From Macrostomum lignano (Eukaryota), in NCBI GenBank assembly GCA_002269645.1, contig NIVC01000894.1, forward strand, positions 124,001 to 188,000: 64,000 bases of DNA, written 5' to 3'. The notes under the pieces are model-generated. The model saw nothing but the letters and a program-made list of their open reading frames with translations, had not been told where the DNA came from and did not search any database. Positions 35,001 to 47,000 of this stretch are shown one piece after another. Positions within the stretch are counted from its first letter, which is position 1; every line of letters begins with the position of its first letter. Position numbers and translations under genes: made by a program.

Positions 35001-38000
35001 AGAGTCCCAGTGTCTCAGAGTCCCAGTGTCTCAGAGTCCCAGTGTCTCAGAGTCCCAGTGTCTCAGAGTCCCAGTGTCTCAGAGTCCCAGTGTCTCAGAG
35101 TCCCAGTGTCTCAGAGTCCCAGTGTCTCAGAGTCCCAGTGTCTCAGAGTCCCAGTGTCTCAGAGTCCCAGTGTCTCAGAGTCCCAGTGTCTCAGAGTCCC
35201 AGTGTCTCAGAGTCCCAGTGTCTCAGAGTCCCAGTGTCTCAGAGTCCCAGTGTCTCAGAGTCCCAGTGTCTCAGAGTCCCAGTGTCTCAGAGTCCCAGTG
35301 TCTCAGAGTCCCAGTGTCTCAGAGTCCCAGTGTCTCAGAGTCCCAGTGTCTCAGAGTCCCAGTGTCTCAGAGTCCCAGTGTCTCAGAGTCCCAGTGTCTC
35401 AGAGTCCCAGTGTCTCAGAGTCCCAGTGTCTCAGAGTCCCAGTGTCTCAGAGTCCCAGTGTCTCAGAGTCCCAGTGTCTCAGAGTCCCAGTGTCTCAATG
35501 TCTCAGTGTACTAGTGTCTTGGTGTCTCAGTGTCTCAGAGTCCCAGTGTCCCAGTGTCCAAGTGTCTCGGTGACTCGGTGTCTCAGTGTCTGTGTCCCAG
35601 TGTCTCTATTTGTCTTTCTGTCTCACTGCATGTTTTCCGGGTTTGCTTACCCCTAGCTTCGACTAACATTTTCCTGCCTTTACCTGCTTCCTGCCCATAC
35701 TAGCAGCATCCCTTTCTTAGCTTCATCATTAATCTTGAAATTCCAATCACGCAAATTAGACTAGAAAATATCAGCTCTTTCGTTAAAGACAATTTCTTCA
35801 CAGGAAATTTGAGACAAGCAGCAGAAATAATTTTAGTTTGTCCAAGTTCTGGGCCAAGTAAATTGCTGTTAGAAGCGTGAATAGGTGTGCAAGCTGAGCT
35901 GATGCGGTGATAACAAAGGCGGACAGACAGGGGAGCGCCAAAGCTACTGCAAGGGGGCGCCAAAGCTACTGCAAGGGGGCGCCTAAGCTACTGCAAGGGG
36001 GCGCCAAAGCTACTGCAAGGGGGCGCCAAAGCTACTGCAAGGGGGCGCCTAAGCTACTGCAAGGGGGCGCCAAAGCTACTGCAAGTTGGCGCCAAAGCTA
36101 CAGCAAGTTGGCGCCAAAGCTACTGCAAGTTGGCGCCAAAGCTACTGCAAGGGGGCGCCAACGTTACTGCAAGGGGGCGCCAAAGCTACTGCAATGGGGG
36201 CGCCAACGTTACTGCAAGGGGGCGCCAAAGCTACTGCAATGGGGGCGCCAACGTTACTGCAAGGGGGCGCCAAAGCTACTGCAAGGGGGCGCCAACGTTA
36301 CTGCAAGGGGGCGCCAAAGCTACTGCAAGTTGGCGCCAAAGCTACTGCAAGGGGGCGCCAAAGCTACTGCAAGTTGGCGCCAAAGCTACTGCAAGTTGGC
36401 GCCAAAGCTACTGCAATGGGGGGCCAAAGCTACTGCAAGGGGGCGCCAAAGCTACTGCAATGCAAAGTGGCGCCATATCCCCGAGAATCGCAAGCCTGAC
36501 AGGCTTCTTCATCCCCGCCAGGCATCATAACAAATATCATCAGATTTTAATATTCCTCAGCGTGCCGGACCGGCAATTCCCAAGCGGCTCAGACTCCGGC
36601 CTTAAAGCTCCCCTCATCCGCCCACGCAGGCCAACTGGCAGATGATGCAGCTGGAGTCTGTGTTCCCAGCGATGAAGCAGCGAGAAGCTGACTGCCTGGA
36701 AGCGGCGCTGAAAGCTCGAATTAAACTGTTAGGTCGGCTGCTGACCCCGCCAAGAAACTCAACAATGCCACGGTCGCCTCCGCAGTGTCCCGTCACCTTT
36801 GACGGCTTCATCTGCTGGCCGGAGACAGATGCAGGCTTGACGGTGAGTCAGCCCTGCCCCGTCGGGGTGTTCGAGTCCGGCTCCGCCACTCGCCGATGCC
36901 GCCAGGACGGGACCTGGGATTTCCCGGGCAGGTTGAAGCTGAACGCGTCAAATCTGACCGACCAGAGACTCATCGTGACTGACAGCTCCTACAGCAATTA
37001 CAGCGACTGTCCACCTGGCAACTTGTATGAGGCCATGGCGCAGAGGGTGAGGCCCGATCTCCGTTACCTGTGTCTGAATCTCCCTCACATGTGTCTGAAT
37101 CTCCCTCACTTGTGTCTGAATCTCCCTCACTTGTGTCTGAATCTCCCTTACCTGTGTCTGAATCTCCCTTACCTGTGTCTGGATCTCCCTCACCTGTGTC
37201 TGAATCTCCCTCAACCGTTTATGAATCTCCCTCACCTGTGTCTGAATCTCCCTCACCTGTGTCTGAATCTCCCTCACCTGTATCTGAATCTCCCTCACCT
37301 CTGTCTGAATCTCCCTCACCTGTGTCTGAATCTCCCTCACATGTGTCTGAATCTCCCTCAACCGTTTATGAATCTCCCTCACCTGTATCTGAATCTCCCT
37401 CACCTGTGTCTGAATCTCCCTCACATGTGTCTGAATCTCCCTCACATGTGTCTGAATCTCCCTCAACCGTTTATGAATCTCCCTCACCTGTATCTGAATC
37501 TCCCTCACCTGTGTCTGAATCTCCCTCACATGTGTCTGAATCTCCCTCACCCCTGTGCCTGGATCTCCCTCACCTGTGTCTGAATCTCCCTCACCTGTGT
37601 CTGAATCTCCCTCACCTGTTTCTGAATCTCTCTCACTTGTGTCTGAATCTCCTTCACCTGTGTCTGAATCTCCCTCAACCGTTTATGAATCTCCCTCACC
37701 TGTGTCTGAATCTCCTTCATTTGTGTCTGAATCTCCTTCACCTGTGTCTGAATCTCCCTCAACCGTTTATTAATCTTCCTCACCTGTGTCTGAATCTCCC
37801 TCACCTGTGTCTGAATCTCCCTCACCTGTGTTTGAATCTCCCTAACCTGTGTCTGAATCTCCCTCACCTGTGTCTGGATCTCCCTCACATGTGTCTGAAT
37901 CTCCCTCACTTGTGTCTGAATCTCCCTCACCCCTGTGTCTGAATCTTCCTCACCTGTCATCTCCTTTGGTTCCCAGCAAGATTGATTTCGTGGAATCCAA

Positions 38001-44000: not shown

Positions 44001-47000
44001 ATCCCATCCTTCAAGATCCTATCCTTCTAGATCTCATACATGTAGGATTCTTAGGAATCCCATCCTTGCTAGATCCCATCTGTCAAGATCCAATCCTTCT
44101 AGATCCCATTTTCTCAGCTCCCATCCTTCTAGACCCATCCTTCTAGACCCCATCCTTCTAACACCCCATCCTTTTCAGATCTCATCCTTCTAGATCCCAT
44201 CCTTCTCAGATCCCATCCTTCTAGATCCCATTCTTCTAACACCCCATCCTTTTCAGATCTCATCCTTCTAGATCCCATCCTTCTCAGACCCCATCCTTCT
44301 AGATCCCATTCTTCTAGAGCCCATCCTTCTAGATCCCATCCTTCTAGATCCCATCCTTCTCAGCTCCCATACTTCTAGATCCCATCCTTCTAGATCCCAT
44401 CCTTCTCAGCTCCCATCCTTCTAGATCCCATCCTTCTAGATCCCATCCTTCTCAGATCCCATCCTTCTCAGACCCCATCCTTCTAGATCCCATTCTTCTA
44501 GAGCCCATCCTTCTAGATCCCATCCTTCTAGATCCCATCCTTCTCAGCTCCCATACTTCTAGATCCCATCCTTCTAGATCCCATCCTTCTCAGCTCCCAT
44601 CCTTCTAGATCCCATCCTTCTAGATCCCATCCTTCTAGAGCCCATCCTTCCTAGATCCCATCCTTCTAGATCCCATCTGTCAAGATCCCATTCTTCTAGA
44701 TCCCATCATTCTAGATCCCATTCTTCTAGATCCAATCCTTATTAGATCCCATCCTTGTAGATCCCATCCTATTTTGATCCCATCCTTCAAGATCCTATCC
44801 TTCTAGATCTCATACATGTAGGATCCTTAGAAATCCCATCCTTGCTAGATCCCATCTGTCAAGATCCAATCCTTCTAGATCCCATCTGTCAAGATCCAAT
44901 CCTTCTAGATCCCATCTGTCAAGATCCAATCCTTCTAGATCCCATCTGTCAAGATCCAATCCTTCTAGATCCCATCCTTCTCAGCTCCCATCCTTCTAGA
45001 CCCATCCTTCTAGACCCCATCCTTCTAGACCCCATCCTTCTAACACCCCATCCTTTTCAGATCTCATCCTTCTAGATACCATCCTTCTCAGCTCCCATCC
45101 TTCTAGATCCCATCCTTCTAGATCCCATCCTTCTACATCTCATTCATATAAGATCCTTATGAATCCTATCCTTGCTAGATCCCATCCTAAAATCCCATCT
45201 CATCTCAAATTCCAGAAGTTGAAAACGCACGTCTCAGAAGTTGAGCAAAACCGGCGCGTGGGCGTTGAACGCTTCATCTGCCAGCAGCTGCAGAAGGCCT
45301 ACGAATCCAGCTACACCGGAAGCAGCAGCCGCTGCCCGCCAGCCTTTGACAGCGCGATGTGCTGGCCGGGAACACCAGCCGGCAGCCGAGTGTTCGTGTC
45401 CTGCCCCAGCCATGTGAACGATTTGGCACGAGGCAAATTGGCCTGGCGCACCTGTCTGGACAATGGCACCTGGCTTTGGCCGGAGTCGGTGGTGGCCAGG
45501 AATGACAGGGCCAGGGCTGAGGGCTGGACCAACTTCTCCGACTGCTATGCAGCCAAGGACACCGTGAGGAGAGGAACTGGGCGGACAGATGGACTGGGGT
45601 TTTGGACAGATAGACTGCAGGTTGTGGACGGATAGACTGCAGGTTGTGGACGGATAGACTGCAGATTGTGGACAGATAGACTGCAGGTTGTGGACAGATA
45701 GACTGCAGATTTTGGACAGATAGACTGCAGGTTGTGGACAGATAGACTGCAGGTTGTGGACAGATAGACTGCTGATTGTGGACAAATAGACTGCAGATTG
45801 TGGACAGATAGACTGCAGATTTTGGACAGATAGACTGAAGGTTGTGGACAGATAGACTGCAGATTTTGGACAGATAGACTGCAGGTTGTGGACAGATAGA
45901 CTGCTGATTGTGGACAGATAGACTGCAGATTGTGGACAGATAGACTGAAGGTTGTGGACAGATAGACTGAAGGTTGTGGACAGATAGACTGCAGATTTTG
46001 GACAGATAGACTGCAGGTTGTGGAGAGATAGACCTCAGAGGTGGATAGATGGACCTCAGAGGTGGATAGATGGACCTCAGAGGTGGATAGATGGAACCTC
46101 AGAGGTGGGTAGATGGACTTCAGAGGTGGATAGATGGACCTCAGAGGTGGATAGATGGACCTCAGAGGTGGATAGATGGACCTCAGCGGTGGACATATAG
46201 ACCCATGGTGACACACAGACTTGGTAGTGAATGCACAGACGACTAGACAAGTATTTACCAAACATTCTCGTGACGTCACGGATCCCGGTTGCCATCCAGA
46301 TTCCATTCGAGGCGGTGGTGCGAGCCATCCACACGATGGGTCACGTTGGCTATGGTGTCTCCATGACAGGACTCCTCTTGGCAATCTTGATCCTGGCAGC
46401 AATCAGGTGACATTTTTATCGGGTATTAATCAGCACTGAACAGGAAATTAATTTTTATTTATTTTTAATCCTCAAAAATTATCCAGGAGGCTGCACTGCC
46501 AGAGGAATTCTATTCATATCAACCTTTTTGTGGCTTTTCTGCTTAGAGGCATCAGCCACTTTGTGGCATATTTTGTGCTGGACGACAATGCGGTGAGGCT
46601 TAATGTCGTGTCAAATAATCAATACATACTACAAACATCGATGGTGCCCTAGAAAGGTTAGATGTACTTTTATTATACCGGCCAAAATCAAAGGGGTTAG
46701 ACTGACAAAGATTAAAGGACTAATCCCGGCAAAAATCAAAGGGGTTAGACCGACAAAGATCAAAGGGATAATCCCGAGAAAGATCAAAGGGAAAACCCTG
46801 ACAATCATCAAATGAATAATCGCGACAATTATCAAAGGGATAATCCCGACAAAGATCAAAATGATAATCCCAACAATCATCAAAGAGATTAGACCAAAAA
46901 GCATCAAAGGGATTAGACTGACAAGCATCAAAGGAATTTTCCCGACATACATCAAAGGAATTATCCCGACAAGCATCAAAGGAACTATCCCGACATAGAT

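Follow-up and report, generated by a model that had tools for sequence, protein, structure and literature searches.

We have analyzed a 64,000-nucleotide (nt) stretch of the Macrostomum lignano genome (contig NIVC01000894.1, positions 124,001 to 188,000 of the forward strand; hereafter the window, in whose own numbering all positions are given). It contains a gene for a seven-transmembrane (7TM) receptor in which two consecutive exons, HRM1 and HRM2, each encode an extracellular HRM domain. We read this gene as a class B1 receptor of the PTH-receptor-like (PTHR-like) type with a tandemly duplicated ectodomain, whose intron phases were inherited and whose two HRMs are probably included together; we put the probability of this reading at about 0.7. 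In the history proposed here, the two phase-1 introns inside the ectodomain would have been lost first, and the resulting single exon, bounded by phase-0 introns on both sides (0-0), would then have been duplicated in tandem. Duplication of a 0-0 exon automatically produces three consecutive phase-0 introns, and the frame symmetry would reflect ancestry and duplication instead of adaptation for splicing. The main mRNA would most likely include both exons and specify a two-headed receptor. In such a receptor HRM2 would be the canonical membrane-proximal ectodomain with its usual role in capturing the C-terminal part of the peptide, and HRM1 would be a diverged extra copy that adds to or modulates binding. 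Occasional exon skipping would be frame-neutral.

Structure of the receptor gene

The receptor model comprises 10 exons on the plus strand between 31971 and 52113 and encodes 603 amino acids (aa). Exon borders were predicted from homology and consensus splice sites, and AG/GT is found at all of them. The intron phases are 0,0,0,2,0,1,0,2,0. Exon 1 (31971..32036; 66 nt, 22 aa) carries the start codon and a predicted signal peptide, recognized by eye from a short N-terminus that is basic and then hydrophobic, and ends in phase 0 at a GTAAGT donor. Exon 2 (36630..37046; 417 nt) encodes HRM1, the putative membrane-distal extra copy, and exon 3 (45216..45563; 348 nt) encodes HRM2, the putative canonical membrane-proximal ectodomain, with a GWTNFSDC motif. 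Both HRM exons are in phase 0-0, encode six cysteines, and have AG upstream and GTGAGG downstream; the HRM1 acceptor is tightly constrained by an in-frame stop 8 codons upstream of it. The stalk and the first transmembrane helix (TM1) follow in exon 4 (46300..46406; 107 nt), which is entered in phase 0 and left in phase 2.

The initial annotation had described this run of phase-0 junctions, from the end of the signal exon through both HRM exons to the start of the TM1 exon, and the coordinates and AG/GT dinucleotides were verified. It had further stated that every combination of the HRM exons keeps the frame. This is correct: the forms with HRM1 and HRM2, HRM1 only, HRM2 only and neither encode 603, 487, 464 and 348 aa, respectively, with zero internal stops, and the signal peptide exon and TM1 are kept in all four. 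Among the proteins of the libraries searched, none corresponding to an HRM-skipped form was found. No third HRM-coding open reading frame (ORF) was found by a profile scan of the window in all six frames. The possibility of a hidden third HRM exon or of a second receptor gene upstream was rejected, as neither tblastn nor the six-frame scan gave any match. An in-frame ATG lies 23 codons before the TM1 exon, at the end of intron 3 (46231-46299), and the frame stays open through the acceptor into IPFE... A start at this codon would yield a headless receptor without signal peptide; the ATG is probably there by chance.

Domain content and relationship to the PTH receptors

The locus is predicted to encode a class B1 (secretin-family) G protein-coupled receptor (GPCR) on the basis of its 7tm_2 domain and HRM ectodomain. 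The Pfam 7tm_2 profile (PF00002) matches residues 287-531 with an E-value of 3.7e-56 and is covered end to end. Each HRM exon, searched alone, matches the Pfam HRM profile (PF02793) above its gathering cut-off of 26.2 bits: HRM1 scores 56.2 bits (E 4.7e-15) and HRM2 50.1 bits (E 3.7e-13). Both exons encode an N-terminal helix region, six cysteines and the FD..CWP..CP..R.C..G.W..N[YF]S.C motifs. The two domains are 28% identical to each other (E 1e-10).

The best PDB matches are PTH1R and PTH2R (5e-61 and 1e-56), followed by the secretin receptor (1e-50) and then the VIP and glucagon receptors. It is HRM2 that lines up with the ectodomain of PTH1R, and HRM1 is therefore the extra, membrane-distal copy; when HRM2 is queried alone, its top PDB match is again PTH1R. 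In a library of 1.8 billion proteins the closest relatives of the 7TM domain are single-HRM PTH2R/PTHR-like receptors, with scores of 130-168 bits, from fish, ticks, bivalves, a snail and a nemertean. Thus PTH1R, PTH2R and the protostome PTHR-like receptors are the best match for the 7TM domain and for both flatworm HRMs, and the receptor appears to belong to the PTH-receptor-like subfamily, a placement by similarity ranking and intron match. An example of a protostome PTHR-like receptor is the Tribolium iPTHR (Xie et al. 2020, PMC7224569). For flatworms, no more than one or two GPCRs of the secretin family have been listed, among them a PTHR-like receptor with an HRM, e.g. Smp_170560 (Zamanian et al. 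2011, PMC3261222). PTH receptors have one HRM, encoded by three exons in fish (and, by inference from isoforms, in a mollusc), whereas the flatworm gene has two HRMs with a single exon each. No description of a two-HRM PTHR-like receptor was found in the literature searched, and Cardoso 2020 contains no mention of HRM.

HRM1 is the more diverged of the two copies; the GWTN[FY] motif is missing from it, and a long insert precedes its last cysteine. These features would also fit acquisition of HRM1 from another B1 or adhesion-type gene through exon shuffling instead of internal duplication, and for some proteins with one or several HRMs the best alignment in the representative search is to the HRM1 part. 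However, HRM1 queried alone finds PTH2R as its top PDB match (1.4e-7), with PTH1R also ranking above the GHRH, calcitonin and CRF receptors. Its exon has the same layout as that of HRM2, in phase 0-0 and with no inner introns, and it lies directly upstream of HRM2. We consider such shuffling unlikely. Since the two exons are adjacent and homologous, are both 0-0, and both have the PTH receptors as their nearest relatives, the most likely origin of the tandem is duplication of a coding block with frame symmetry.

A paralogous gene with the same two HRMs

Two M. lignano protein models bear on the window gene. The first (P0201; A0A1I8FA57) maps to the window exons from TM3 onward, with 96-100% identity over most segments and 86-89% in frame-slipped parts; it contains frameshift-type errors, and five intronic codons are read through. 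On this mapping the window is from M. lignano or a near-identical haplotype. The second model (P0001) is 43% identical to the window receptor and has two HRMs in the identical order. As the first model identifies the window as M. lignano, the second represents a paralogue, and the alternative that it is the orthologue from another species was rejected on the same ground.

Between the window gene and this paralogue the HRMs match like with like: identity is 39% for the HRM1 pair and 45% for the HRM2 pair, and 29-36% for the cross pairs. In a rough neighbour-joining tree the two HRM1 sequences pair, as do the two HRM2 sequences, and HRM2 falls among canonical ectodomains. This pattern suggests that the ectodomain was duplicated before the gene was and that both HRM copies have been retained in two genes. 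The single ORF of the paralogue contains both HRMs, and the two genes share a conserved linker between the HRMs (Y.A.A.R / T.VS) that spans the exon junction.

These comparisons also bear on whether HRM1 belongs to the receptor at all. It could be a pseudo-exon left as a relic, or belong to a separate gene for a secreted HRM protein, the true receptor running from the signal exon to HRM2 with one HRM. The 37046^45216 junction is predicted only, the HRM exons are separated by an 8.2-kb repeat-filled intron with a large palindrome, the closest relatives outside Macrostomum have a single HRM, and multi-HRM proteins without a 7TM domain exist in the databases. Against such an artefact of the gene model, the HRM1 frame is intact, with its six cysteines, its core motifs and a score of 56 bits on the Pfam profile; its exon has consensus AG/GT borders in the correct phase; and exon 1 provides the only start codon with a signal peptide ahead of HRM1. 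Furthermore, the paralogue has an orthologous HRM1 in one ORF with HRM2 and the 7TM domain. The presence of HRM1 in both paralogues argues that the copy has been kept under selection in two genes, and we regard an artefact as very improbable.

Ancestry of the phase-0 borders

The exon structure of a milkfish PTH2R gene (P0096), whose coding sequence was reconstructed exactly, has the phases 0|1,1|0|2,0,1,2,0,2,0,0. Its ectodomain is encoded by three exons (97+111+122 = 330 nt), flanked by a phase-0 intron behind the signal peptide and another ahead of TM1. Of the nine introns in the flatworm gene, eight match milkfish PTH2R in both position and phase, namely all six in the 7TM region and the two that bound the ectodomain; only the HRM1|HRM2 junction is new. 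Among the matching introns is the R|RLHC phase-2 intron after exon 4, which is common to fish PTH2R and whose conservation was noted by Cardoso et al. 2006 (PMC1764030). A calcitonin-type receptor of the damselfish Stegastes partitus with four HRMs (P0152; XP_008287491.1), whose exon map was likewise reconstructed exactly, has the phases 0|1,1|0|1,1|0|1,1|0|1,1|0, followed by the 7TM introns; each of its HRMs is encoded by three exons, and each such unit is again bounded by phase-0 introns. The statement in the initial annotation that vertebrate B1 genes spread one HRM over several exons therefore holds in both fish genes. In the bivalve Mya arenaria, isoform X6 of a PTHR-like receptor omits exactly 37 aa (111 nt) within the HRM, a gap that equals the middle ectodomain exon of milkfish PTH2R in length. 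This match argues that the inner introns occur in a protostome too.

These exon maps show the B1 ectodomain to be an old module: phase-0 introns mark its borders, and two phase-1 introns divide it internally. Neither flatworm copy has the two inner introns, and each HRM occupies one exon. The initial annotation had suggested that whole-domain exons explain how the tandem arose. Duplication of a frame-symmetric block agrees with our results, but the single-exon state was not needed for it: because in the damselfish receptor a three-exon unit was multiplied, it is the pair of phase-0 borders that made duplication safe for the frame.

As the phase-0 borders are inherited from the B1 family, the frame symmetry of the HRM exons is no evidence for exon swapping by splicing. 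The run of three phase-0 introns is also not beyond chance given the phase usage of the gene itself, in which six of the nine introns are in phase 0 and the probability that the first three all are is 0.24. Frame compatibility is a precondition for the use of these exons as cassettes and is almost uninformative about how they are actually spliced.

Other receptors with tandem HRMs

Word-indexed protein searches yielded three proteins only, and the other tandem-HRM receptors come from an exhaustive search of representative sequences combined with a local HRM profile. Proteins with two HRMs and a 7TM domain were found in a damselfly (Ischnura), a shrimp (Penaeus), a sea spider (Nymphon), a mayfly (Cloeon), Varroa mites, a scorpion (Centruroides) and a fly (Condylostylus), where the models are named 'CGRP type 1 receptor-like' or 'PDF receptor'. 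The same search recovered the fish receptor with four HRMs as well as many proteins that have multiple HRMs and lack a 7TM domain. The arthropod receptors resemble the flatworm protein in having two HRMs followed by one 7TM domain. Their 7TM domains are nevertheless distant from that of the flatworm gene, scoring 68-92 bits as against 130-168 bits for the single-HRM PTHR-like receptors, and this distance argues that the flatworm tandem arose independently within the PTHR-like branch. The Varroa gene has both HRMs and TM1-6 in one exon, unlike the flatworm gene with its separate exon for each HRM, and the annotated isoforms of the arthropod receptors are not distinguished by an HRM.

The damselfish receptor is similar in that a whole ectodomain module is repeated before one 7TM domain and any unit could be dropped in frame. 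It differs in belonging to another B1 subfamily (its 7TM domain scores 75 bits to the flatworm gene) and in being built from four three-exon units, and it represents an independent event. A pufferfish calcitonin receptor (CTR) is said to have four hormone-binding domains as well, reportedly in work by Nag et al. in 2007 (Gen Comp Endocrinol 154:48).

Two further groups of database proteins came to light. Six proteins from ENA assemblies (P0003-P0006, P0008 and P0072) have 6 to 11 or more tandem HRMs and no 7TM domain; in the representative search, up to 21 matched stretches were found in such proteins, which may be secreted. Two models from the abalone Haliotis rubra (P0011 and P0014) have an HRM-7TM-HRM-7TM layout. 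They resemble two adjacent PTHR-like genes fused by annotation, which would imply tandem gene duplicates.

Inclusion of the two HRM exons

The initial annotation had proposed that one 7TM domain could switch its ligand specificity by alternative splicing. On such a reading the HRM exons would be regulated cassettes or a mutually exclusive pair, and different cells would carry different heads on the same receptor. In support of this, all four combinations are in frame with signal peptide and TM1 retained, each exon encodes a complete six-cysteine ectodomain with its own N-terminal helix region, and the two HRMs have diverged far enough (28% identity) that their peptide ligands could differ. In vertebrate B1 receptors, splice variants of the ectodomain, such as the N-terminal variants of the PAC1, CRF and calcitonin receptors, change ligand selectivity, and there are tandem exon duplicates that have become mutually exclusive. 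An annotated isoform with an ectodomain exon skipped likewise exists for the Mya arenaria PTHR-like gene. The skipping in the vertebrate variants and in Mya X6 leaves the frame intact and takes out a portion of one HRM; exchange of whole alternative HRMs, as proposed for the flatworm gene, would be a different kind of event.

Other observations speak against such a switch. The same frame symmetry is present in fish PTH2R and in each of the four damselfish HRM units, and the phase pattern has the probability of 0.24 within the gene given above. The lengths of 417 and 348 nt are both divisible by three, which is necessary for cassette exons and not sufficient, but they differ by 69 nt, unlike those of typical mutually exclusive pairs. 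The ORF of the paralogue, an automated model, has both copies, which together with the conserved linker suggests a contiguous HRM1-HRM2 protein. In five other tandem-HRM receptors the annotated isoform pairs differ in the 7TM or C-terminal part and never by an HRM. Finally, several minisatellites begin 10-20 nt from splice donors, including those beside the HRM exons, and such fast-evolving sequence leaves scant room for the conserved intronic elements of regulated exons. A ligand switch by splicing thus seems improbable to us, and the evidence, which is weak and indirect, leans toward joint inclusion of HRM1 and HRM2.

Several points weigh against our reading of a two-headed receptor with an inherited phase pattern. 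Constitutive inclusion of both HRM exons is a prediction from sequence comparison. The paralogue model is automated and has defects at the positions of the TM1 and TM4 exons and of intron 9 of the window gene, and an ab initio predictor would also fuse mutually exclusive exons into one ORF. The order of events, intron loss followed by duplication, is proposed on grounds of parsimony. A structure prediction from a three-row alignment (predicted local distance difference test score (pLDDT) 39.6, predicted template modelling score 0.22) shows two successive runs of one long helix and three strands, a pattern that loosely fits two ectodomains; at this pLDDT the prediction is too poor to show independent folding or packing of the two HRMs.

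Remaining exons, introns and neighbouring sequences

Downstream of TM1 the plus-strand model continues with exon 5 (46487..46592, phase 2 to 0), which encodes the first intracellular loop and TM2; exon 6 (47292..47451, phase 0 to 1) with TM3; exon 7 (49667..49800, phase 1 to 0) with TM4 and the second extracellular loop; exon 8 (51070..51161, phase 0 to 2) with TM5 and the third intracellular loop; and exon 9 (51239..51389, phase 2 to 0) with TM6. Exon 10 (51883..52113) encodes TM7 and the C-terminal tail up to a TGA. Alternatively, this exon may be spliced at 52077|52078 to one more exon. The GTGAGC at 52078 is a potential phase-0 donor, and there may be an eleventh exon and a C-terminus other than that given by reading through to the stop at 52113. 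A candidate for such an alternative last coding exon lies on the same strand at 54628..54678 and is used in the M. lignano model A0A1I8FA57, whose final 16 aa are encoded at 54622-54675.

The receptor introns (31000-53500) consist almost wholly of minisatellite arrays, whose periods range over 4-85 nt; among them are a 16-mer array of 103 copies at 33963-35606, a 15-mer array at 43716-45143 and 943 nt of (ACAG)n at 47698-48640. Minisatellite introns are ordinary for M. lignano, in which simple and tandem repeats make up 15% of the genome (PMC5730564). Intron 2 (37047..45215, plus strand, phase 0), the 8.2-kb intron between the HRM exons, is filled with minisatellites almost throughout and also contains an inverted repeat of 1639 nt (37962-39600 and 41056-42694), with arms that are 99% complementary and 1455 nt apart. 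It is flanked by a 21-nt minisatellite in opposite orientations, forward at 37057-37957, reverse at 39249-40940 and forward again at 40954-41407. The inverted repeat is either a real foldback, which would form a long pre-mRNA hairpin between the HRM exons, or an artefact of long-read assembly. A repeat scan of the whole window was dominated by microsatellite families, and this palindrome was its sole useful result.

Upstream of the receptor, an ORF for an inositol polyphosphate kinase is present in two copies on the minus strand, at 14955-15512 and 23859-24680 (Pfam IPK, 5e-32 and 2.8e-39). The copies are ~8.9 kb apart, and the surrounding repeats are duplicated as well, e.g. the ORFs at 7687-8790 and 16797-17705. 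The kinase copies and their duplicated surroundings identify this region as a tandem segmental duplication.

Significance

The tandem-HRM architecture itself is already known in arthropods and teleosts. The main value of the flatworm gene, if our reading is confirmed, would be evolutionary: the B1 ectodomain would be an old phase-0-bounded module that has been multiplied independently, as single exons in a flatworm PTHR-like receptor and as three-exon units in a teleost calcitonin-type receptor. The flatworm gene retains eight ancestral intron positions and has lost the two within the ectodomain. Exchange of heads by splicing, if true, would be a ligand switch of a kind undescribed for class B1 receptors. 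A two-headed PTHR-like receptor in a flatworm capable of transgenesis would offer a tractable system in which to study the function of a second ectodomain.

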